Shown here: positions 1 to 16,116 of the stretch, piece after piece | Layout of the letters: the number at the start of each line of letters is the position of its first letter | How positions within the stretch are numbered: the first letter of the stretch is position 1 | Assembly (NCBI GenBank): GCA_907165135.1 | Contig: OU015568.1 | Coordinates: 12,276,001-12,340,000, forward strand | Origin: Oikopleura dioica | Taxonomy: Eukaryota; Animalia; Chordata | Length of the DNA: 64,000 bases | Direction of reading: 5' to 3' | Program-made: the position numbers and the translations under genes | The notes under the pieces: model-generated | What the model was told of the DNA's origin: nothing | Seen by the model: only the letters and a program-made list of their open reading frames with translations | Database searches by the model: none

Positions 1-3000
1 TTCCCTGCGCAGGAGTCGGGATCTGCGTCCAGAACTAGCTGTAGATCAAATGCTGGTATGATGTTATCAACGCGTGGCCTCGCCACGTCAGCTGAAAATT
101 ATCGTTAATTTAGAGTCTGTTAAATCGTATTTAAATATGCATCTCTGAAAACACCTCCAAAGGGCGAAATATTCCGTTCAAGAAAAGACTTTTGAACTTT
201 TTAAATAATTGTAATTGATTCAGTCGTGAATGAAAAAGATACGAATACGAAAAATAATGGTCTGTCTGAGAGTAACCGTGGCGGTGAAATTCAATCCCCG
301 CAAAGCGCGACCCTATTCATAATCGTATTTTGGCTCTCATGATCAGCCTCCTCAAGTCGAGCTGATAAAATTAATGTCCCAGGGGATGTAGGAGAGAACA
401 CGGGGGGACTCACGAATTTTCAATTAATTTTGTGATCTACATGCCCTGTGAGGAGCCGACCAATAATTCATTTTCGAGTGTATCTGTTTCATTTTGCCGG
501 AGTCGCTCTTTCGTAAAATACATGTGTACCTTTGATGAGGATAGTGACAAGCTCGGGCCTGCCACTGTCGCGAGTGAAGAATCGACTGACTTGATTTATT
601 TGGACTGGGCTGAAAGTATAGAACGTAATTTGCATGCGAATTACTTTTGCGTCCTTACCTAAATGGTACAGTAGCGATAAGATGACTTTCAGCACTCTGA
701 CAGTCAGATATACTATCGCCAGATTTTGGTCCTTTACAACAGGACCATTGAAGGGCTTCGCGGTAAGTAGGATTTTGGATTTTAAACGCGGCTGATTTCT
801 ATAATCATTTTATTAAAGGATTTCAAGGCCCCTTGTTTCGAGCTCTTAAAATTCCTTGCTCGGCAATTATGCGTCATTTTCGATCACACAATTAGAAAAT
901 ACTATCGTGTTTTTCGGCGACTTACTTTATCTACAGTTAGCCGGGAAGTTTGTTTTTGATAATATTTGAAAAGAGAATCTTCTTCTTCAGAATTGCGACC
1001 AATAGGCTTAATTAAAAAATTGCTAGAATAAGTGCTCGCCCGTTGAGAAAAATACCTTGACAAGATCGCAGGGGCCTCTGTACATGAAGCTTGCACGCGA
1101 TTCATCTCCATCCAGGAGAATTGTATCGCCTCTACCGACTGAAAGCTTGTTAGCAAAAGTCGAGACGAAGGAAAGTGTTCTTACTTTTCAGAAGAATAAA
1201 AAGGAAGGGGAGCATATTACTGTGGTTGCGATGAATTCATTCGGAATTATGAGTAAGTTGAGTCTGAGTTTGGGGATTTTCGGGAGCGGCATTTCGGATA
1301 ATTGAATAAATTATTTTGTTTACGCCTGTTCTAAACAAAGCAGTGCTCTCCTCGCTGAGCCGATGTCACTGGTGACATTCGTAAGTAGCTCAGCGCCCGT
1401 CCTCATCCCTCTTTAACAGTCCAAATTTCACCAGGTATACTTGCCAGCCAAGTAAGTAGATACCGAGGGCAAAAAAGGACGTCCCGCCGGGTCTCACAAA
1501 GCGTCGAGTAAAATGCTCCGCGGATACATTTTAGTTGACCCTTTTGAGATAATAGATAGATTAAATACGCCGGCGAGGCTTAGCTCCAATTATTGTACAG
1601 AAAAAAAAACGAAAAACGCTGATACCGGCATAATGACTAAATTATGAGTTGCGTCTTATTCTAGTCAACCCACTTGCTTGTGCCGCGTGTATGAATAAAG
1701 AATATCAAAGGAGAATTTCTCCTAGACGACGATGAAAACATAAATATTCTGAAGCCAAGGTCTGACCATATTTTACGATGATTTTATGAAGTTTGGAAGT
1801 GATTAAAGAATAAATTTGATAGAAAGCTTATTTTGGCGCTCGAAAAAACATGGTTTTCTGGGAGAAAATTTCTACTGAAAAATTGGCGAGGCTATTTTTA
1901 TAAAATTTCGCTGATGAAGGCCGATATGACATCTGCGAGAATGATATTTAAACTGCTAGCGGCAAGATGTCTGTTGACCCAATAGTTCAATATTTTTATG
2001 AGCAGAGTAACGTTTGCCCTCGACCTTCCACAGCGAAACGAGCGAAAATGCCCCCGCCGAGTCTGTATTTGGCCAGGTAAATATGTTCTAATCATTGACG
2101 CTAAAATTGGCACGTTTATTTGACGAAAATGAATTAAAAAGATTACGCCTCTCAAACAGCAGAACACAAACACACACAAGGCCTGATTTTTGTGCTGATC
2201 CATGCACGAGTAATAGCATTTCTAGCGTCTGGCGGTGCGAAGAACCGCTATCAAAGCAAAAAAAAAAGGCAAGAAGATTTAAGCGCCGACGGGAAAGGCA
2301 TGGCGCGTCTGGTCCCGTCTGTGAAGGAAAGAAAAACGAAAGCGCGGCGCTGATTTTCCACTCTGCTTCCAACTCGTTTGTTATCAGCACTTGAACCGTG
2401 CCTGTAAAATGTACATAACATTAGCGAGTAAATTGTAAAAATCGATCGAGAAGAAAAAACGAAAGGGTTTTTTTTTCTCTTTCTGGACGCGATCGATCTT
2501 CGCGATCATGGCCGCTGCACCGGCAACGTGCAGTGTAAATACTGTATTTATCTTATCTCCACATTCAATTCGAGTGTGGATGAGAAATCCCCCGTGCCTT
2601 GGAACTGATGGAGTACTTCGTAAAGGGAACTTTTTCTGGGCGTTCGGTGATGCGTGGTTTACTCCACACGGAGCTATTTTTGGGATTTATTCACTCTCCG
2701 CTTGCTTAGATTTAATTAAACACGAGTGTTACTCAAGCATCCATCCCAAAATTATCCAGAACAGATGCTCCGACGAACAAATATACACATTTTGTCCCCT
2801 TTGTCCCGCGGTTTTTATGAGTATCGTAATCATAAACTTCAGAAAGTCAGAAACTTGAAGTAGATTTATTGCTGGATTCTAACATTACCGGGCGAAGGTT
2901 GAGGCCGTTATTTATTATTGTCACAGGTCTAAAGTACAGTCTTGTGCACTGCCCCGTGCACTGTAAAACGTGTGTAAACTCGCAGGAGGTAATAAACCCG

Positions 3001-6000
3001 TTCCTTGTGCATGGCAATCTGCCGCTTCTCTGAGCGTCGACGAAGATCTCTCTCTTTCTCTTGTCGTCGTCTCGATTACCGATTTCTAAAACAAAACATT
3101 TTCAGCCTTGTTTTAACGCACACGCCCGCCATTAGTATTTTCAAAGCTGGGCCAGAACTGGAGACAGAAAACAACAGCAACAGCAGATATCTACTGCTTC
3201 TGCTGTCGAGCCTTCTGTTGATGTTTAGATCTGTTTCTTTCACACAGACGATCTCTCTCTGACTCTCTTTCTTTCTCGTGGTTTTTTCGATTTTCCTTTT
3301 TCAATATTTTTCTTTGGTAGCAGTCTCTTTTGGTTCGTGAACCGGCGAGCCAAGCGCGCCATCGTTGAAAGCCAGGTTCGCTTAAAAAGCAGCACGTCCG
3401 CGCGCGCTTCGCCCCGCGCCTTCGATCTCGCTTTTGGTTCGAAAGTGCGGGCCGAATGTTCCCGTGCGGGCCACTGCGGACCACGGCGACTTCGGTGCGG
3501 GTCGGGTCCGCTGGCGGCGCGGGCGAGGCAACGCGCCATAAGGACATTGAACCGGGAGGCTCGCTTTGGAAGTCACTCTCAAAGGCGCGGTTAAGAAGCG
3601 AGAAGAGCTTCGAGGCGTAGGCGGACGGGAGCAGTCGGGCGATGACGGGAGAGACTGCGCCGTTGCACGCGCCGAGGAGCTCACGTCCGCGCTGGAGATG
3701 ATCCTCGGCGACCAATCGCGCCTGAGCAGGGGCGGCACTTGATCTTCTGAAACTTCAAGTGCAACGCTCTGAGCACACGCCAGACCTTACCTATTCAACC
3801 ATTTACCAGGCTAGTAGATGAACATTATCGATGGCTCACATAAGAGCGAGCCCACCACACCAGATTTGGACCCATGCTCAAGTTCACGGCTCTTGGGGTC
3901 GTCCAGATTTCACAACGACGGTTGTTGAATTATCCTCACGTGTGCCTCGACCTCCAGAACAATTAAGACCTGTGTTTTCACCCCGAGCGGACGGAAAGTT
4001 TTTCTTTCGAGGGTTAGTTGGGGTTCATTATTTCGACACTAGTAAATAATCTGACTTCCTTATTTTGAATACAAATAGCTTATGCAAAATAATTTGTTCT
4101 TGTGGGTTTAACCCGGAATATCAAAATAAACAGATAAGAAATTGTAAATTCTAGGTAAAAATCTCAATCTCTTATCAGAAGAATTGCAGGAAAATTCGAC
4201 ATTTACCTTATTTTTTGACGCTACTGTAATTAAACTCGCTTCAATCAATTTGAAAGTATCTTTCTTTTCAAATCAATTATGAGCTGCTGAAGGGGTCGGC
4301 GGTTGTTTTTGATCTCTAAATTTCAACACAATTTCGAATTCAAGACTTTCGATTTCTTCACCAATCCGCAATAGAACTGGTGTGGTATGTGTTGATTTAC
4401 ATTGATGAACTCCTGAAAACGCCGGTACTAACGCGCGGATACGCCTGGTGCGCTGAATAATTTGATCGAAATCCTCATTGAATTAAGAATAAATCGACGT
4501 TTCTTTCAATAGCTACGGTTTCTCTTGAGAATAAGACGCAAATTCAAAGTTCAAAAAAACGTGTTTTCTCATTTCGTCTATTTTTTAATAAATGTATTTT
4601 TTGTGTTTCCGCCGGAAATATGTATATTTTAAGAAACAGTCTGATTACTGTATTTATCTACCCGAAAATTGTTGAAATATTTCTTCAAAGAAGAGGCTAA
4701 ATTTCATGCACAACGGCAATTGTTTAATATGCCATCAAGGTAGGGTAGTTAAACGAAGGAAATAGACTAAAGCTGACTTTATGTATAGGTTTAAGGTAAT
4801 TCTGATGGAGACCTTTCAAGAGGCTCCTTATCGGCGGGAGCGCAACTCAGCAATCGAGCGCGGAGCTGACGTGGATACGACTTGAGGAGACTTTCCCGGA
4901 TCCAATTTTAGAAAAAATATATTACTGATTTATTTCTAATAACTTTTGATTGACGCGCTGGCTAAATTAACTAGTGCATATTTATAATAAGAAATCAATG
5001 AAGATGGATCTTGGATCCTCGTCGACCTTCTTTTTTGCCGGCACAGACGCGAGCTGTGGTCAGCTTCTTCTTCAGACTTAATTAGTTGAAATAAAAAATT
5101 ATTTGCCCTTGCGAGGAGCCAGCGGTTTCGGGGAGCGCACCTTCTCGATAAGCCACCTCGTAAATCATTAATTTATTAGTAATGAACTTCGACAAGAGTC
5201 AGCAGAATTCGCCTTTGACCTGGCGCGCTGATAATCGCTGAAATTTCACTCTTCAAAGGAAATTCAACGAAGGCGGAACTTCCTCGCCGGATGCGCGTAG
5301 TCAACTGTTCATCTCTGGCTTCCGTTACGAGCCGTTTTGAAGTCTGGCCGTCCTTTTTTGTTGACAAAGTAGCTAAATAATTTAGACGGTCGTTTTTACA
5401 TTCTCAGAAGCTACAATCGACAGGCAGTCTGCTTCCGTGACCGCAATTATTCTGATATTATTCCGTCACATTTCAGCGGGTTCAATCGTCTTCCTGTCCA
5501 GGTTGAGTTCAGCGGGCGTCTGTTAATCGCGAAATTTATTGAAGCCTATAAACACGTTACGTGTTCGCCTTCTCATTTTCAAGGTTCAATATTGAAGAAG
5601 AAAAGGGAAAATTTCACCTTCATCGTAATTGCTTCATTTATCAATGGAATAGTGTATAATCAAAATGGAACTCTTAGTAGCATTTGAAAATTCCCGCATG
5701 AGCCATTTATTTCCTGTAAAACCGGGGCTCTTTGAAGCACGAGTGTCTAAAACACACCTCGTTTATTCTGAGAACTCACAGATTCGCCAAGTTCAAGAGC
5801 CAGAAATCCTTGAGACAAAGCTCTTCTCTTTGCTGAGAGGCTTTTGTTTTCGCAGACTCTCTCATTGTGAAGTAGTGAGTTTACCAGTCTACGAAGGAAC
5901 TTACTGACCCCAGTCGGTATGGTATAATTTTTGGTTGGAACAATAAAACCTCAAGCTGGTCTAGCTCGACCGCGCTAGAGTTTAAGCCTATTGTTGACTG

Positions 6001-6125
6001 CAGTTGCTCGTTTTTGACAATGAAACTTAGTGATGATGCTTTCATTGCGCATCAGCACTAATTCGAAGGTATAAAAAATCACTTTATTCAGCGAGTATGG
6101 ATATAACAGCTTGCAAAGGATACAC

Positions 6126-6971
6126 TTAGTTTAGCAGGCAAGACTCATAAGTAGGCACCATGTACTTGATATTGATGAATGCATCTGGACCACCGTGCTT
6201 CTCGAACGCCTCGAGGGTCTCTTGGATCAATTCTCTAGAATACAGTCAGTCACTTGTTTACTGGCTTGTTACTGGCTTACCCGATGTTCTCCCGCTTTTG
6301 CTGCGAGTAGTCGATTCCGTCGCCGCTGTTGAGGTTCATGTTTTTGAAAATGTTCAGGATGGGGAGAATCTGGCGGTAGTAGGGAACCAAAGCTTCGCCA
6401 ACGATATCGGCAGAGATGACGAGGTGCTGGAGGACCTTCAGTGTCGTGCAGATGGTCGGTCGGCATCGCGTGTTCAGAGCGTTTTTAATCGGAATGATCA
6501 GCTGGGGAATAACTAAAGAATAGTACTCAATATTCTATTGCTGAAAAGGAAAGTCTTACCTGGAAGAATTTTCGATCCACCATGCTCGAGCATATCATGA
6601 ACTCCTTGTCTAGCAAAGAATTCATATGGGTGCGTTGTTTCGCTATTGAAAACAGTAACATAACGTGTCAAGCAAAAGTTTCTTACCATAAGCCATCGAA
6701 AAAGAGTGGCAAATAATGGTGATAGTCAAGCTTCTCGATCTCTACTTTCCATGCGATTCGATTTCCTTTTGTATCGTGCTCAAGGGCGATGGGGAAATCT
6801 CCTCGCTCATAAAATTTTCGGAAAGAGGTGGGACCTAGATTAAATTCTTATTTGTGACTTCCGAAAGGAGATCTTACCGCTCTGTCGTTTTTTGAAGGCG
6901 CCAGCGGTAGGTGGGCCGATGATCTGCGCTTTGGGGCTCCTTGATTTGATAGTGAATCCTTCGGTCTCCAT
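6126..6971 (-). CDS. PACRG: Parkin co-regulated gene protein (axonemal inner-junction protein), multi-exon
   Basis: Spliced translation gives METEGFTIK...[53 protein letters not shown] and [17 protein letters not shown], nearly identical to PACRG as I recall it. GT-AG introns; ATG at 6971, TAA at 6126-6128. Confidence 0.95.
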
Positions 6972-7162
6972 CCCACCTGCTAGATACTGTCAAATGTTGA
7001 AAAAAATCTCCCGCGAAAGAAGGGAAAAAACGAAAAAAGATCTTACCTTTTCCGGTTTTTTATTTAAACTGATTTCAAAAACCGAGATTTGGCAACAACA
7101 AGGACCCTGTTCTAGAAAATCGACGAATAAGTTGAGTTTATTATGCAGTTTTTTTATTGTGG

Positions 7163-9966
7163 TTAAATTGATGATACGGATCCGTTGGCGATTTTTGAGT
7201 GCGCAATCGCCACTTTTTTCTGCCTCTTCATTTCTTCTTTCATCGATCTTCGTATTGAAATTTGCTTTGGCGCGTTTTTCGAAAGATTTGTTACGTTTTT
7301 CCACACTTGATCAATTTATCAATGGTTTTAAGATTAAATTGCTGTACCTTTTAGTATGTCGACGTACCACTGCTCTTGCTCGAAGCCCATTTCGAAAGAG
7401 AAAGTGATGTCCCGCGAATGAGTTTTAATAAGAATCGCCTCAGTGTCTTTTGGCTTGATCTTTTCCACCGAGATGATCTCGTCGATGGGAATGACGATCT
7501 GCTCGGCCGGTATCTCGAGCCGATTCGGAAAGAGAAAAATCTCTCTTTTGGACCACGTTGGGTTGAACCTTTTTTGGGGGTCAATTATCTGGAATTATTG
7601 AATCGCAAAGAAGATACCTGGAATCGGCGGCTTTTGAGCAAACTCCTCGGATTAAAATGTCTTGAAATTCGGTTTCTTGAAGCTGATCGCCGCTGTTATC
7701 TTCGTTTTGACTCTTTTCAATCGCATTTTGAGTGGACAAGTCAAAGACAGTGTCTATTTAGGTTTCTATGATGCTATACTAACGTGAGAGATAAGAAACA
7801 TAAGAAACCATAGCTAGAATTTCTTTTCGCCATTTAGTCTTGCTTATAAACTCGTATTTTGCTGAACTATTTCCGATGCATTTTGAGTCTTGTTCCAAAC
7901 AAGCAATTCTGTCCACTATTTCTTCCTCTAGCAACCATTGATGATTTGAAAGGATATTGTCAAACCTGTTCTTGTTGAGACGATAATTGGTGCATCAATT
8001 GTTTTAAGCTCCATTTGTGACCAGTTTGTCTGATGGAAGATCTTCTCCGTTCGGATTTGATCGACTTTCAGGCGCGCACCTGGGTCGCTGCTTCTTTTGG
8101 ATTCGTTTTGTGCAACAATAGTTACCCAAATCAATATTTGACGTACTTATATCAAAAAAGGTGGCTCGACAATGTTTTGTAAAAATCCAAGCTTAGCATT
8201 TTTGCGAGCAAAATTTGCAAACCAAGTGGCGAGACTTGATTCAATCTGTCAAGCAATTTATACGATATTTGCTCCGTGATAGGGTCCGTCACTGAATGAA
8301 ACAGGTTAGGTTTGTCTTCTGCTGCTGTGTCTTACCTATTGGCGACTCTCCATAAAACAAGTAATAAATTGTGCAGCCAAGAGAGAAGATATCACACGAT
8401 TTGCTGTAGCTGTCGGAGATAACTTCCGGTGCTTTGAACTGAGGGGAACCGACGTCGCCAGTGATTTCATTGTTGTTAGAGCAGATGACAGCGTCGAAGA
8501 AGTTACTGATCATGCAATGTCCGGTGCCTGAGAGTCGGAATGAAAAATCAATTTTCTAAAGCTCAATTTGATTTTGGCTTTTTGTCCGTTCCTGAGATGA
8601 GAATCGACCTCGGACAAATGTTTCTGTGGCAGATATTATGCTGGTGTATGAACTCCAGGCCAATGACCATCTCGCACGTGTAGAAGAGCACCTCCTCCAA
8701 GGTGAATCCACCGCGCTGATTATGCAGCTTCAGCAAATCGCCCCCGTCGCCAAAGTCATGGACTACAATCGCAATTATCCATCATTCTGCTACACTACTT
8801 AAGACTTACTGAATAAGATGGTCGAGCAATCCTGGAATATGTAGCTGACTTGGTCGATAAAAGCACCTTTCGTGCAAGATACGCTCATTAGAAACTCGTT
8901 TATTTTCTATGACCAACAAATCATCAACGATCATTAACAACTGAGTTATGTTCCAGACATAAGCGAGCCACGTCCCTGAGAAGAGTCAAAATGTCAAAAT
9001 AGTTTTCTAGCTGATCGAAGTCTGGCATTTTGTCTTTTGCCATAATTCGAAGCGCGTATGTTGCATTCGTATCCGTTTTCGTTACTTTGTAAACGTCACC
9101 TTTTAGAATTGGTCATTAAAAGATCAAGACTAATCGTCTTGAGTTCGCTTTCGCCTGGGTTTTTAATTGAGTTAGCACGAGTTCAATCGGTGTTGATTTA
9201 GTTAGAGTAATGACCATGACGAAATGGCCAGATTCGATCTTGGAATAATTGCTAAATGTGTCCAAATTTACTCGCAAATCAAGCTCTAGGCATTTCCACT
9301 GAAGGTAGACTGTCGATGAATATGAATCTTGGAAGACGTCCCAGCCGAGATAGCTCAATAACGAGTACAGTAGATGATAGTCTGAGGGGATATACTTAAG
9401 AACCTTCTCCGCGCTCCATTTAAATAGCTTATCCCATTCCTGATGAAAATACAATTTCTTCATTTAGCTCCAGTTTTCTTATAAAAACCTCAATCTGTTG
9501 AGAGTCCAGCTCAAATCCTCAAAAAAGCTCTTACTAAATACTCTTCAGACTTGACAAGAAACCTTTAAGCTCGGTAGATTTATACACATTTCGGAGCACA
9601 TAAACTAACTCGTTGAGGTATCGTGTGATTCCAATCGGTCGTATTTTATGCTGAAATTGCACTTGAACGAAATGAGCTAAAAGCAAAACTTGCTTGTTTC
9701 TTGCTGAGCTCAAAAATCTCCATAAGTCCTCTGGTAGTACGATCTTCTTGAAGAGCTCTTTTGATGAGTTTGGTTCCGATTGCATCTTCCCACACATCGT
9801 CGAAGTTCCACAGATGATTTTGTTCAAGAAATCTCTATATCAAAGAAATAAAGTTACAATAGTTGCTGGTGCATCTTACCAGAACAACAGATCTTACAGA
9901 AGTCGGAGGTAAGTCCAGTGATTTAGCTCTTTTGCCACGTTTCGATACACGTCTCAAAATATCCAT
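7163..9966 (-). CDS. GRK2/GRK3 (beta-ARK)-like protein with RH, kinase-fold and PH domains; probable pseudokinase
   Basis: Hand-spliced segments align colinearly with GRK2: LPPTSVRSVV (N-term); QWKCLELDLRVNLDTF; GDVYKVTKTDTNATYALRIM; YIFQDCSTILFIHDFGDGGDL; FYTCEMVIGLEFIH; DIFSLGCTIYYLFYGESP; YEFISKTKWRKEIL; and PH-domain IFLFPNRLE. Some exon joins are unresolved. Confidence 0.85.
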
Positions 9967-11575
9967 CTTCGGAGAAAAAAAAAACTATTCTATCTAGTAG
10001 CCATAAAGCACGTGATAAATGTTCATTATGCACAGTTAAGTCCCGCTATGTCCATTTGAGGGAGGAGAATGGCCCTCTGTTGCCTCCGTCTCATTAAAAC
10101 ACGGGAAATGAAAACCGAAGCACTTAATGCTCGCCCGATAAATATATCTACTCAAAGAGGAGCTATATATTTGGATTGAAAGCATTTACTTTACGTCAAT
10201 TTTGTAATGTCTGCTACAAATTGATGTGTACCGTTCCTGATTTCAAGCTCAGCTCGCGATTGTCTTCTGCTGAGCTTTTTCTTTGGAGCTCTGATGTTGA
10301 AAGCCTAGAAAAAAAAATAGAATGAATTTTCACAGTAATTACTATCTCCTTGGAATTACCTTGAAAGCCATAGCAGCAAGGCGAACACATTTTCTTATAT
10401 AGGCTCAGCGCGTCAATTTTACTACCAGTGGCAAGTATTGGCAATTTTAAAACGATACGCAGCCGAAATGAATTATTCCACGGCCCAGTAATTTTCTTCT
10501 GAGCCCGAATGCCTAAATCGTTCCCTCGCTCGCTTCCTTTTTTGCAGATTTTCTGCTTTATGTAAGTTCAATTACTGTTAGCAAAAGTATTTTGACAGGA
10601 GTTGTGACCCGACTGGAATGGCTAATCTTTAGATTTTGACACTGTATATAACCTCATTTGGCTTTGTAACTATATAAATATGTTGCTAAGAAAATAGGAT
10701 GTCAGGGTTAATATTCTCATCTGAAACGCTAAACCATAACCCTAACCCTAAGTTCTATTGATTTTACTTCTAAAAACATAGCTTTTACGAGAAAAAATTT
10801 AAGGCAGTTTCTTCTCGAGCAATTTCGAACTCTTCTTCAACGAAGCTAGGCTTTCTCGACCCGTCCTGCATTAGTGACAGTTGCCTCGTAGAGCGTTTTT
10901 CATTACTGGCAGTGGAACACAAAGGGAATTTGCTCATTTTAATCTTCTCTTGCAAGGGTTTCAAATTGTTATCGCCCAGTTTATAAATTTGATTAAAATC
11001 GAGCAGCTCTCGCTTGAAACGAGTCACTCTTTCCAGCTCAAATACTTGCAGTTATTTTCAGGCTCTGTGTTTGTGTTATGCTATAATTACCTGCGAAGAG
11101 GATAAAGCTCATGAGGTCTGTGAAGCGTATGGGGCTTTACTGACTTATTTATATCTTCGCTTATAGCTGCGTTAATGGAATACGAAAGCTGCTGGGAATC
11201 GAACTGAACCGTCTGAATTCTTACTGTTTCTGTGGGGCGCTTCTTGGAAACCCTTCTTTTGCCTCTCTTTATTTAAAATAGGGCCTTTGGTCGTGGCATA
11301 AGTGTCTTAAATCTGGTGACTTCTAATGAGCAAATAAAAAAATACAAAACAAATCGGAAAATCGGACATGACAAGAATGACGTGCCGTCGATAGACTTAT
11401 CTACTGACAGATGATCGAATTAACTTCCATTTTTGAACGAGTTCATAGCCCATTCAATAGAATCATCTTTAATAAACTCGTGCTTACTGAGTGATCGTCC
11501 GAGATAATGCGACTATTTCTTGAAATACTGTATCTTCCGCTACTGAGAAACGATAAGAAATATTTTGAGTGTTAA

Positions 11576-12329: not shown

Positions 12330-12654
12330 TTAATTTCGAAGTACCAATATTTGCAAATAGCATTCAAATAATGCAATGTGTTGAAAAGAGTTGAAAAGGG
12401 AAACCATTACAGTAGTCAAGAATACGCCCTGGCAGAATAATGGTGGGAACAAGCGCGCTGGGTACGCCCAATCAGGAGCGCGAAATATTTGGAGAGACTC
12501 CTTATTTTTTACTTTCCGCGAGAGAAAAGAAGGGATGAATTCGACATGATCAGAGGGCTTCTGACGGGCGCTAATAAAGGTTGTTTTTCTAGACAAATAT
12601 AGACAAGATTCTTGTCGCATAAATCAAACAATTCGTTCAAATAAAAATTTTGAA

Positions 12655-15084
12655 ATGCTCACTTCAATAAATATGGTATTTACGAAGATTCTAGCGTTCG
12701 CTGATGTGAAACGACTGAACAGACAAGACTGGATTCGCTATCTCAAATCTCCGCGTTGCATTTTCGCTCTCATCCTCACTTTCTGCATCCTTTCCATCAC
12801 ATTCACGCATGTTCCAGGACAATCGTTCTTCTGGACTAGGTAAAAACCCTTCAAGGAAAAATGTTCTTATTTGATGTCATTCTAGCGAAACAACAAAATG
12901 CTCGAGCAAATTCGTCGAAAAATACACTTCTTTGGAGCAAATTGGCGCGATAAAAATCTTCAAAGATTTTGAATCTCCTGATGTTGAGAAAAACTCGGAT
13001 GTGATCCTCGGTAATGGACATGTGATGCTGTCAGCGTTCGATCCTACGGATGTCTCTATTACATACCAGGCTTGGATTCGAAAATATTCGAAAATAATAA
13101 TAATTTAAAATCGTCAATTTTGAATTCAATAAAGGACAACCGCCACGTGATACCCTTCGATATGAGCTGGGACATCGAAATTGAAAATAGCAAAGAAAGG
13201 CTGGGAAACGCTTACATCGACTACAGAACTGGAGTTTTGACGAAGTCAACTTGCCACGGCGTTTTCGACAACTGCTTACATGTGTCTCATAAAATGCTGG
13301 TCCACAGATCGCAGCCGAATTTATTTCTTCAGGAAAGTGTTGAATTCTAAAGATGAATTTAAAAAACTTTTTGCAGGCAAAATTCTGACTTTGCCTTTTT
13401 CATAAAAAATTTTTAAACCCATAAAAACCTTAGTAGAGTCTTTAATAAGCTTTCATCTGAGCTATAGAACACTCCGTAATTCTTTCGGAAAGGCTATTAA
13501 AAATAGACTCAAAGTTTTGCCTTTTTGGGACCTTCTGACGTCATTTGTGACGTCATTCTCTAGAAAATTTCGAAAACGATTTGGTCGAATCGACTCAAAA
13601 TTTTACGGGCTTTCATGAGGGCAGAAAATCCGGCCAGGTCAGAAATTTGCCTGCAAAAAGTTTTTAAATTCATCAAAGATATATATTTTTCCGAAAAAAT
13701 TAAAATACCCCAAAAAAGACGATGCGTTTCACCTGGACTGGCTTCCATCTACACGAAGTCGAAATTCTCATCAATCCTCCAACTCCAAAGTCGACAATTA
13801 AAAATGTCAAAACAACGGAGAAAACTGAAGAATACACCTACAGAATAGCATCAGGATTGTACGCTGCTATCATCACCGAGATTCTGCCGGAATCATTTTT
13901 GCTGAAGGGAGACGAGAAAACGAAGCTATTGAGCCAGAAGATTGTGTTTGGAATGGCGAAAACGAGCGAATCTGCGTTGGAAGTGGCGAGAAAGAATATG
14001 AAGGCGGCGCAAGAACAGTCTGATTTGAAGCTGATAGAAGATCACGAACAAGCATGGAAGGATCTTCTTCATACAGGCATTCACTTAGACCCCGATGACC
14101 CGGATCCACATCATATCATTCCTCGGGCGCAGCTCGTCAATTCTACGGTTCATTCTATCATGGCCGTCACGCCTAGCAAAACGCAATCGCAAGCTCTCGG
14201 AGAAGACTATCAGCTGATTCCAAACGCTCCAATTATGACCCCAGATTACTGCTACAACGGAGTAGCAACGCTTCACTCAAACTCGCTGTGGAAGGACGTT
14301 TTGACCATTGATGAAGCTTTTGCCCTGCGAGATTCTTGGCAATTGACGCTCAAGAATCACGGCTGCAGCGGCCTTGTTTATGTAAGCACTTATTTCACTC
14401 ACATAATTTCATTTTTCATATAGGCTGGAGCAGAAGGCCTTCTACAAGCAATGGTCCTGAGCTTCGCGGGACTTCAATTTACATCAGAACACCTAGCGCT
14501 TGGAACTGACCCTGAAGTTCTTCACAACGAAATCGGCCTCTCTAATATTCGCTACAAAAACTCTTCCATCGACATTTATCTCATCAAAGAAGACGGAATA
14601 GAACTGCCGGAAATTCACGTCACTGCCAGAAAATTGTCTAAATTTGCCGAGAAAATCTACGCTTGCGAGGTAGCCAGAACTCTTTTGTAACTCTTATGAA
14701 TTTATCATTTTAGGCTGGTTGTATGCTACAGATAGAGCCAATATCAGCTGAAGACATGAAGTTTCCAATTTTTGTTACGAAGCCCGCAACGCCAATTTTG
14801 TATATTTCTCACTCGAGGGAACATCTCGATCTTCTTCAACACACTCTTCATGTAGAAAGCAAAATCTCCCACGCTGAACACTATTCTTCCCATTCTTCTG
14901 GCATTTCTGTTTATTTCTGGTAAGCAGATCATTTATAGTCTAATTTATGAATCGATTTAGGTACTTCTTCGGTGCATTTTTCTTCCTGTTCCATTTTTGT
15001 CTCATTCGCCTGGTGCTGAAAGAATACTGGAGTTGGGGGAGCACGCCGCAGCAATATTCATATCGTTTCAGACTTCAACCTTAG
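12655..15084 (+). CDS. KIAA2013: KIAA2013 homolog (membrane-anchored protein), multi-exon
   Basis: Motifs VHRSQPNLFLQ, LIEDHEQAWKDLLHTG, YCYNGVATLHSNSLW, WQLTLKNHGCSGLV, MVLSFAGLQFTSEHL...DPEVLHN, TPILYISH and a C-terminal TM (FLFHFCLIRLVLKEY) match KIAA2013. The start could be 12655 or 12673. Confidence 0.92.
13352..13674. mobile_element. Intronic MITE with ~38-bp TIRs carrying two TGACGTCA sites
   Basis: GATGAATTTAAAAAACTTTTTGCAGGCAAAATTCTGAC at 13352 is inverted at about 13638-13674; AAA flanks both ends; lies in a KIAA2013 intron. Confidence 0.7.
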
Positions 15085-15306
15085 TTCAATACTGACCATT
15101 TTAATATTTATTACTTTCTGTCGCTGCTTCATACCAATAAAATTTCCATTCAATATTCACAAGCCAAATTGCAGTGTCTACATTTGCAATTTGATCGGCC
15201 AATGTTAGTAGCTCAAGATTAGTACTAATCTTCTTTTTGTGTCCTCAAGGCGTTTACCGGTACGGCCGCGCGCGACGATGTTTCATCCTTCTTTCATTCA
15301 ATCAAA

Positions 15307-16116
15307 ATGAGAGCAGTTTGTCTTCTCAATTTATTGAGCCTGTCTTTCGCTAATGAAGATAAGCCGCAATTTGGAAAGATCTACGAATCCGTCTGGCTCG
15401 AGATCGAAGTCGACGGATACCCAAGAGGAAAGTTCCATGTCGGGCTATTTAGAGACATCGTTCCAAGAACCACGAAGAATTTCAAGAAGCTAGCATTGAG
15501 TGATGCTTATCCTTCGTACAAAGGCACCATTTTTCATCGTGTTTCGAACTGGATGATACAGGGCGGAGATGTCGAATACAAAGACGGGGTTGGCGGCGTT
15601 TCAATTTATGGAAAGACATTTGATGATGAAAATTTCGACATCGGTCATTATCGAAAAGGTTTGAAAAGCATCAGTTCTTCTTTATCTCTATTCAAAAGGA
15701 TACGTCGCTATGAGCAATTCGGGGCCGAACACGAACGCGAGCCAATTCTATATCATTACGAAAAGATGCTCTCATCTGGATGGAGAATTTGTCGTTTTTG
15801 GCAAAATCATTGAGGGCTGGGAAGTTATCAAGCAGCTACAGGAAGAGCCAGTTAATGACGAGGATGACTATCCCGATAGAAAGATAAAGGTCGTCGCAGC
15901 TGGAGTCAAGGAAAGTTTCGGACAAATCTCGAGACTCTTGTCTTTTTGAAAGTATTTCTACGGTCTCTAAAACTCTGAAAGCGCTTGTTAAACCCTTTGA
16001 TCGTGAACTTTCAAGAGGATTTCATGGAATCAATGCAGGAAGACAAACCCGAAAAGAAAGAAGAGCTCCCAGATGGTGTTGTGACTGAAGATGAGCTTCG
16101 AAAATTAGAACTTTAA
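15307..16116 (+). CDS. Secretory-pathway cyclophilin (PPIB/PPIC-like)
   Basis: Signal peptide, then [60 protein letters not shown]. The last-exon frame is ambiguous (ends at 16087 or 16116). Confidence 0.9.

Follow-up and report, generated by a model that had tools for sequence, protein, structure and literature searches.

Can a GRK2/3-type kinase lose its catalytic residues and still be maintained as a working protein? The question is raised by a GRK2-like gene on the minus strand of a 64,000-nucleotide stretch of Oikopleura dioica DNA (assembly GCA_907165135.1, contig OU015568.1, positions 12,276,001 to 12,340,000; hereafter the window), which runs from position 9966 to 7163, with an ATG at 9966 and a TAA at 7165-7163. 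A sequence-only reading of this DNA had described all three kinase motifs as degenerate and had proposed a kinase-dead scavenger or scaffold for G proteins. Our analysis indicates that the locus is, very probably, a real and conserved pseudokinase gene derived from a GRK2/3-type kinase; taken as a whole, the observations are probably best explained by an intact, selectively maintained protein that works by binding.

Gene model and catalytic positions

The gene model was read from the genomic DNA and by comparison with contigs of relatives, and comprises about 15 exons separated by short introns (30-121 nucleotides, roughly 45 being typical); in the window sequence, the spliced frame is open from the ATG to the TAA across the whole model. 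The predicted protein has 682 residues in the 15-exon provisional model and 672 with the intron 12 join that homology favors. Database searches were run exon by exon, and the joined protein model was used only for tblastn against the loci of relatives and for the estimates of selection. The features of the gene are as follows (lineages A and B, contigs L016/L017 and L018-L021, respectively, are close relatives).

9880..9966, minus strand: exon 1; start codon and short basic N-terminus ending in LDLPPTSVRSVVL; GT donor; 90% identical in lineage A, which also has a Met start
9694..9834, minus strand: exon 2; presumed N-terminal RH region; downstream intron of the GC-AG type (donor GCAAGT); no GRK or RGS profile match
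9563..9650, minus strand: exon 3; presumed RH alpha-5 region (the Gαq site in GRK2); 69% identity to sister lineages
9453..9517, minus strand: exon 4; presumed RH region; lowest conservation of all exons (58-60% identity)
9220..9406, minus strand: exon 5; end of the RH domain, beta-1 and Gly loop (ESGHF + G); 3' end provisional; family profile matches GRK2/3 162-202
8972..9099, minus strand: exon 6; beta-2/beta-3 with YALRIM; Arg codon 9047-9049 at the place of GRK2 K220
8810..8906, minus strand: exon 7; alpha-C to beta-5 region; 5' end provisional, about 9 residues more than in distant relatives
8592..8762, minus strand: exon 8; alpha-D, alpha-E, then the catalytic loop (HRNICPRS, 8628-8605); downstream intron of the GA-AG type; Pfam Pkinase
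8336..8527, minus strand: exon 9; NFF for DFG (8504-8496), activation segment, APE kept; Pfam Pkinase, E 3e-10
8171..8291, minus strand: exon 10; kinase C-lobe; 87-89% identity to sister lineages
7966..8093, minus strand: exon 11; end of the kinase domain and AGC C-tail; weak match to the PKC-theta C-tail; conserved in all relatives
7784..7927, minus strand: exon 12; C-tail and RH alpha-10; 3' end provisional (7814 or 7784)
7618..7753, minus strand: exon 13; RH alpha-11, linker and start of the PH domain; relative P0001 aligns to GRK2/3 from residue 531
7348..7568, minus strand: exon 14; PH domain core; Trp 7555-7553 is the equivalent of W576, Arg 7522-7520 that of R587; 89-96% identity to sister lineages
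7163..7305, minus strand: exon 15; C-terminal helix, basic tail (WKNV..LSKNAPKQ..RRS) and stop codon
8518..8597, minus strand: intron 8 (8591-8528) with flanking repeats; two imperfect direct repeats at the exon 8/9 junction

Re-reading the window sequence showed that the sequence-only reading had placed the degenerate motif codons exactly: on the minus strand, CGA (Arg) lies at 9049-9047 within YALRIM, HRN at 8628-8620 within HRNICPRS and NFF at 8504-8496 within ISNFFDA. The Gly loop reads ESGHF (9235-9221). In GRK2 numbering, K220 is replaced by Arg, D317 by Asn, K319 by Cys, N322 by Ser and D335 by Asn; none of the residues that make up the set of a catalytic kinase (the beta-3 Lys, the HRD Asp, the Lys and Asn of the catalytic loop, and the DFG Asp) is kept in the window protein. 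The three motif-bearing stretches sit inside long exons, away from the joins, and no provisional join (5, 7 or 12) touches them.

These equivalences were obtained from profile alignments. A profile of exon 5 built from five lineages matched GRK2/3 residues 162-202 at E 3.5e-6 and GRK4/6/1 only at E 0.15-0.8, and all of its PDB matches (18/18) were GRKs; because the final Phe of exon 5 is paired with GRK2 F202 and the Arg lies 18 residues further on, the Arg corresponds to K220. The family profile of exon 8 aligns to GRK2 without gaps, position i to 270+i, so that N, C and S of the loop correspond to D317, K319 and N322, respectively. Carried over the exon 8/9 junction, this register places the N of NFF at GRK2 D335, which we take to be the number of the DFG Asp; in a single-sequence match of exon 9 to MAPKAP kinase 2, both Phe of NFF pair with the F-G of xFG. 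The subfamily was assigned from PDB match scores. When the exon 8 profile of five lineages was searched, 13 of the 14 best places went to GRK2 chains (35-37 bits), other scores being 35.2 for NDR kinase, 32.6 for PKC and 29.8 bits for GRK5; exons 8 and 9 both exceed the Pfam Pkinase threshold.

Searched as a single sequence, exon 8 found its best PDB matches in the GRK5 chains 9ckq, 8uap and 9mx2, which read YRN at the catalytic loop; these are presumably engineered inactive mutants, and their Asp-to-Asn change is the same as that in the window protein. The NEF of exon 7 was considered as the site of the alpha-C Glu and dropped, this stretch being absent from distant relatives, and the position of the alpha-C Glu is uncertain.

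Selection, relatives and splice junctions

The ratio of nonsynonymous to synonymous substitution rates (dN/dS, omega) was estimated by the Nei-Gojobori method between the window and each sister contig.

Window vs. L016: 576 codons, dN 0.108, dS 1.41, omega 0.077
Window vs. L020: 481 codons, dN 0.108, dS 1.64, omega 0.066
Window vs. L018: 363 codons, dN 0.092, dS 1.65, omega 0.056

Synonymous sites are near saturation (pS about 0.65) and, therefore, omega is, if anything, overestimated. When the protein was divided by domain, the PH domain with the tail gave an omega of 0.03-0.04, the kinase 0.04-0.05, the N-terminus with the RH region 0.08, and the C-tail with the linker 0.09-0.11; the exon that carries the catalytic loop (exon 8) reached 0.02-0.03. 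Few parts of the protein are as constrained as the kinase-like domain. No stop or frameshift was found in any exon of any lineage. The features of a pseudokinase are thus present, namely, kinase-like sequence, loss of all three key motifs, and purifying selection on the kinase exons.

Lineages A and B, with 75-95% protein identity per exon, keep YALRIM, HRNISP(R/G)S and NFF, free of stops and frameshifts; lineage A still has a canonical Gly loop, GAGNFG. Gene order is shared on both sides: upstream lie genes for a cyclophilin-type isomerase and a DUF2152 protein, downstream one with a ParcG domain, so these contigs carry orthologues in Oikopleura dioica-like genomes (the syntenic intervals are 12400-15930 and 2600-7000 in the window, 4087-7123 in L016 and 1475-5650 in L018). 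Two findings by which the sequence-only reading would have been refuted are thereby removed: the gene is not decaying neutrally, and the Lys, the Asp and the DFG motif are not restored in orthologues, A and B sharing the substitutions.

At least five more distant lineages (L002-7, L008, L009, L010 and L011-15), with about 50% identity, are AT-rich and have larger introns at other positions; these are probably other larvaceans. Two of them, L008 and L011, keep both a canonical Gly loop (GRGTMG and GKGTMG) and the beta-3 Lys (FALK and FAIK), and read HRL at the catalytic loop, with the loop Lys replaced by Ala or Ser, the loop Asn by Ser, and DFG by SRF or SRL. Both Asp are lost in these distant relatives too, with different residues in their place; the loss of catalysis is therefore old, and the positions drifted later. 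The comparison indicates that both catalytic Asp were lost before the distant and close lineages split and that the Lys and the Gly loop decayed later, on the O. dioica branch. The motif substitutions recur in metagenome assemblies that were made independently in several projects.

An exhaustive search of proteins with exon 14 (PH) returned six short open reading frames from marine metagenomes and no annotated full-length protein, in a collection that apparently lacks Oikopleura proteomes. Three further metagenome reading frames (P0007-P0009), all keeping NFF, were found by a word search with exon 9, and a word search with the DFG exon of a distant relative gave only the self-match. Gene structure varies among the distant lineages: in the L002 type (gene at 461-1033 of L002), exons 12-15 are fused in one open reading frame, and L008 and L011 have an intron inside the HR/L codon pair (with a GA donor in L008 and a GT donor in L011) and no Gly-loop intron, the introns of L008 being hundreds of bases long and rich in short repeats.

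Several splice junctions of the gene are unusual. Intron 2 begins with a GC donor, GCAAGT, that the three close lineages share, although they cannot be aligned over its remainder (window 9651-9693; L016 about 8840-8887; L020 about 39-77). Intron 8 is of the GA-AG type in the window, whereas at the same codon lineages A and B have a GT-AG intron. In the window, this intron is flanked by an imperfect direct repeat of 15-16 nucleotides (8597-8583 and 8533-8518), which lineages A and B do not have; the two copies, TCTCAGGAAC-GGACA and TCTCAGGCACCGGACA, repeat the exon 8/9 junction. It looks as if the old intron 8 was lost and a new one was made by insertion with target duplication.

For introns 5 and 12 (window 9100-9229 and 7754-7814, with matching places in L016, L020 and L018), no GT-AG or G*-AG placement in any of the three lineages keeps the residues that are conserved in intron-less relatives (GxGxxG and EML-D-TVF, respectively). 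A single G, common to both ends, may be counted with the 5' or the 3' exon, which gives introns of the GT..AA, GT..CA, GC..TA or GA..CA types, and the mature sequence is the same whichever side receives it; these introns may be examples of unusual splice-site use. The sequence-only reading had flagged the Gly-loop join (exon 5/6) as not exactly resolved, and rightly: there is no GT donor in the right phase, the options being a GC donor at 9229 or sliding GT..AA or TC..AG ends. For the 3' end of exon 12, homology favors 7814 (EIL + D + TVFDLS), and the canonical-GT option is 7784 with a 30-nucleotide intron. Models with a 22-nucleotide intron and a 24-nucleotide intron were discarded as too short. 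The exon 14/15 junction is confirmed by contiguous open reading frames of relatives (P0001, P0005 and P0006). Introns of the GA-AG and GC-AG types are common in O. dioica, for which high GA-AG numbers have been documented (PMC7072748).

PH domain, RH region and proposed mode of action

When compared with all PDB chains, exon 14 gave matches to GRK2/3 only, bar one chance match. The relative P0001, whose exons 13-15 form one uninterrupted stretch, matched GRK2/3 residues 531-671 alone among PDB chains (E 2e-9); AlphaFold models it with a PH core of seven strands plus a helix, with a predicted local distance difference test score (pLDDT) of about 90, and the 32 best Foldseek matches of the model are GRK2/3 PH domains (E 2e-8, root-mean-square deviation 2-3 Å), other PH domains coming after. 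In the window protein, the Trp, Lys and Arg of WSKR stand at W576, R578 and R579, and PNRLE spans P585 to E589, so that R587 is kept; the equivalents of W576 and R587 are invariant in all aligned lineages, and the position of GRK2 K567 keeps a basic residue, Lys or Arg. Across all eight lineages, no stretch of the protein is better conserved than WKNV..LSKNAPKQ..RRS..K.E.K, the segment that follows the PH domain. The description of the protein as GRK2/3-type is borne out by these matches together with those of the RH-kinase junction and the kinase core, which match GRK2 best.

The sequence-only reading had also held that both the RH and the PH domains are retained. This stands for the PH domain and for the C-terminal RH elements, i.e. 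the junction that matches GRK2 162-202 (E 3.5e-6) and alpha-10/11, which align to GRK2/3 from residue 531, but not for the N-terminal RH bundle, for which neither an RGS/RH nor a GRK match was found. Exons 2-4 are collinear with the GRK2 RH bundle in length only. By gap-free collinearity of exon 3, and not by a tool alignment, the position of D110 would be occupied by Val or Tyr, with no acidic neighbor; on this placement, the Asp that binds Gαq in GRK2 seems to be missing. The LDLPP motif is preceded by about 16 residues in the window and in lineage A and by about 10 in L011, and the equivalent motif of GRK2 presumably by about 30, which form the receptor-docking helix. About 16 residues would leave too little room for a GRK-type N-terminal helix, which thus seems to be absent. 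That the Met is also present in lineage A and L011 speaks for the start codon being right. A further exon upstream is possible, but the conservation seen upstream of the ATG is unlike that of a coding exon; a block of about 60 nucleotides, 100-160 nucleotides upstream of the start codon (window 10062-10125; L016 8423-8486), is kept between the window and lineage A amid otherwise diverged non-coding DNA and may be a promoter or 5' untranslated region element.

From the RH-kinase junction to its C-terminus, the predicted protein runs collinear with GRK2. The residues of kinase chemistry are lost and the tail that would bind membrane and G protein is kept; therefore, the protein probably binds rather than phosphorylates. 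To go by the sequence, its main mode might well be that of a scaffold or scavenger directed to Gβγ and lipid, although we put this forward tentatively. Through the GRK2-type PH domain and basic tail, with the equivalents of W576, K567, R578/R579 and R587 kept, the protein would be recruited to the membrane and to free Gβγ, and the rigid kinase-like core would have been kept as a structural or docking module. Sequestration of Gαq through the RH domain, as previously proposed, is doubtful, being less likely because the Gαq-binding Asp seems to be missing; docking to receptors by the canonical N-terminal helix is likewise doubtful, because the N-terminus would be too short to form it.

Several observations weigh against the picture of an intact, binding GRK2/3 derivative. 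The N-terminal RH bundle (exons 2-4) has no Pfam RGS or GRK match, and the PDB profile search with exon 2 also gave nothing; for the kinase N-lobe, a search with the beta-3 to beta-5 piece of a relative gave no PDB match. Introns 5, 8 and 12 require non-GT donors or sliding ends. In the tail, the residues that we take to be K665 and K667 of GRK2 are not conserved as such, and the conservation of PH residues is only suggestive as a pointer to Gβγ and lipid binding.

A decaying duplicate of an active GRK2 would account for the loss of every catalytic motif and for the three non-canonical splice junctions. However, the 15 exons are open in three lineages at near-saturated synonymous divergence, with dN/dS of 0.06-0.08, and the pseudogene reading is therefore rejected as extremely improbable; the gene, moreover, is recognizable at about 50% identity in more distant species, and GA-AG and GC-AG introns, as noted, are common in this animal (PMC7072748). 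It is highly improbable as well that a wrong gene model or assembly errors produced the degenerate motifs: joins 5, 7 and 12 are indeed provisional, but the motif stretches lie inside long exons and recur in the independent metagenome assemblies.

The remaining alternatives concern what the kinase-like core does. Some unconventional catalytic activity could have been retained, as in a few former pseudokinases; nucleotide binding may persist in the part of the family with an intact Gly loop and beta-3 Lys (the distant relatives) or with GAGNFG (lineage A), and the strong constraint on the catalytic-loop exon would also fit. Nevertheless, with five catalytic residues gone at once in the window lineage and with the residues at the Asp positions varying by lineage (N or L; N or R), a pattern of relaxed rather than re-purposed sites, we regard retained activity as improbable. 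Alternatively, the core itself could be the working part and serve some other protein as its decoy or allosteric partner, with the PH domain serving only for localization; that protein might be an active GRK, another AGC kinase, a receptor, or a component of the cytoskeleton or cilium. GRK2 has many scaffolding partners, according to a review (PMC6841920). The kinase exons, at an omega of 0.04-0.05 (0.02-0.03 in exon 8), are as constrained as the PH domain. Many pseudokinases regulate active paralogues allosterically. However, the receptor-docking helix of GRKs seems to be absent, the partner is only hypothetical, and a role of this kind is compatible with Gβγ binding all the same; we consider it unlikely that this is how the protein works and favor a maintained GRK2/3-derived protein that binds chiefly through its PH domain and tail.

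Relation to known GRKs and pseudokinases

It is possible, although doubtful, that the window gene is the sole GRK2/3-type gene of larvacean tunicates, i.e. that their GRK2 orthologue turned pseudokinase early. If so, a whole chordate class would keep the kinase-independent functions of GRK2 (Gβγ and lipid binding, scaffolding), and GRK2-type receptor phosphorylation would have been abandoned or passed to another kinase.

GRK2 is a major drug target. Its kinase-independent functions are already known from engineered mutants; what appears to be new is a natural pseudokinase offshoot of the GRK family, which thus joins the kinase families known to have spawned pseudokinases. Work on the engineered mutants argues that GRK2 damps G-protein signaling without phosphorylation, and a naturally dead GRK2-type protein would be an evolutionary separation-of-function experiment, pointing to the PH domain and basic tail and, more surprisingly, to the kinase-like core as the parts that matter once catalysis is gone. 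Oikopleura would be a tractable animal for in vivo study of the non-catalytic role. The sequence-only reading was aware of no dedicated kinase-dead scavenger or scaffold among GRKs, and our literature search likewise found no paper on a natural GRK pseudokinase, the main cross-kingdom pseudokinase survey lying outside the literature covered and a listing at the database level being possible; neither was a paper found that links Oikopleura with GRKs.

The closest known proteins are GRK2 and GRK3. The window protein shares with them its length, about 680 residues, and the arrangement of its parts (LxLPxxSVRSV motif, RH-kinase junction, AGC core and C-tail, RH alpha-10/11, PH domain, basic tail); GRK2 and GRK3 are the best or only PDB matches of the junction, the kinase core and the PH domain, and the equivalents of W576 and R587 are kept. 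It differs in that K220, D317, K319, N322 and D335 are replaced and the Gly loop is degenerate in the window lineage, and in an N-terminus about 15 residues shorter, an unrecognizable N-terminal RH bundle and the apparent absence of the Gαq-binding Asp.

Among laboratory forms of GRK2, K220R is the standard kinase-dead mutant, with which desensitization of Gq-coupled receptors persists, the standard Gβγ-binding mutant R587Q impairs the binding of Gβγ, and D110A impairs that of Gαq (PMC9699688). The Lys-to-Arg change of K220R is also found in the window lineage. The isolated GRK2 C-terminus known as betaARKct is made of the PH domain and tail, both of which the natural protein keeps. However, K220R and betaARKct are laboratory constructs, whereas the Oikopleura gene is a natural one, under selection in several species, with a far wider loss of the active site. 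It resembles pseudokinase paralogues of active kinases such as PSKH2, ULK4, STRAD and KSR, in which the kinase fold is kept under purifying selection, the catalytic residues are lost and the function is one of binding or allostery; none of the pseudokinases described, however, is known to belong to the GRK family.

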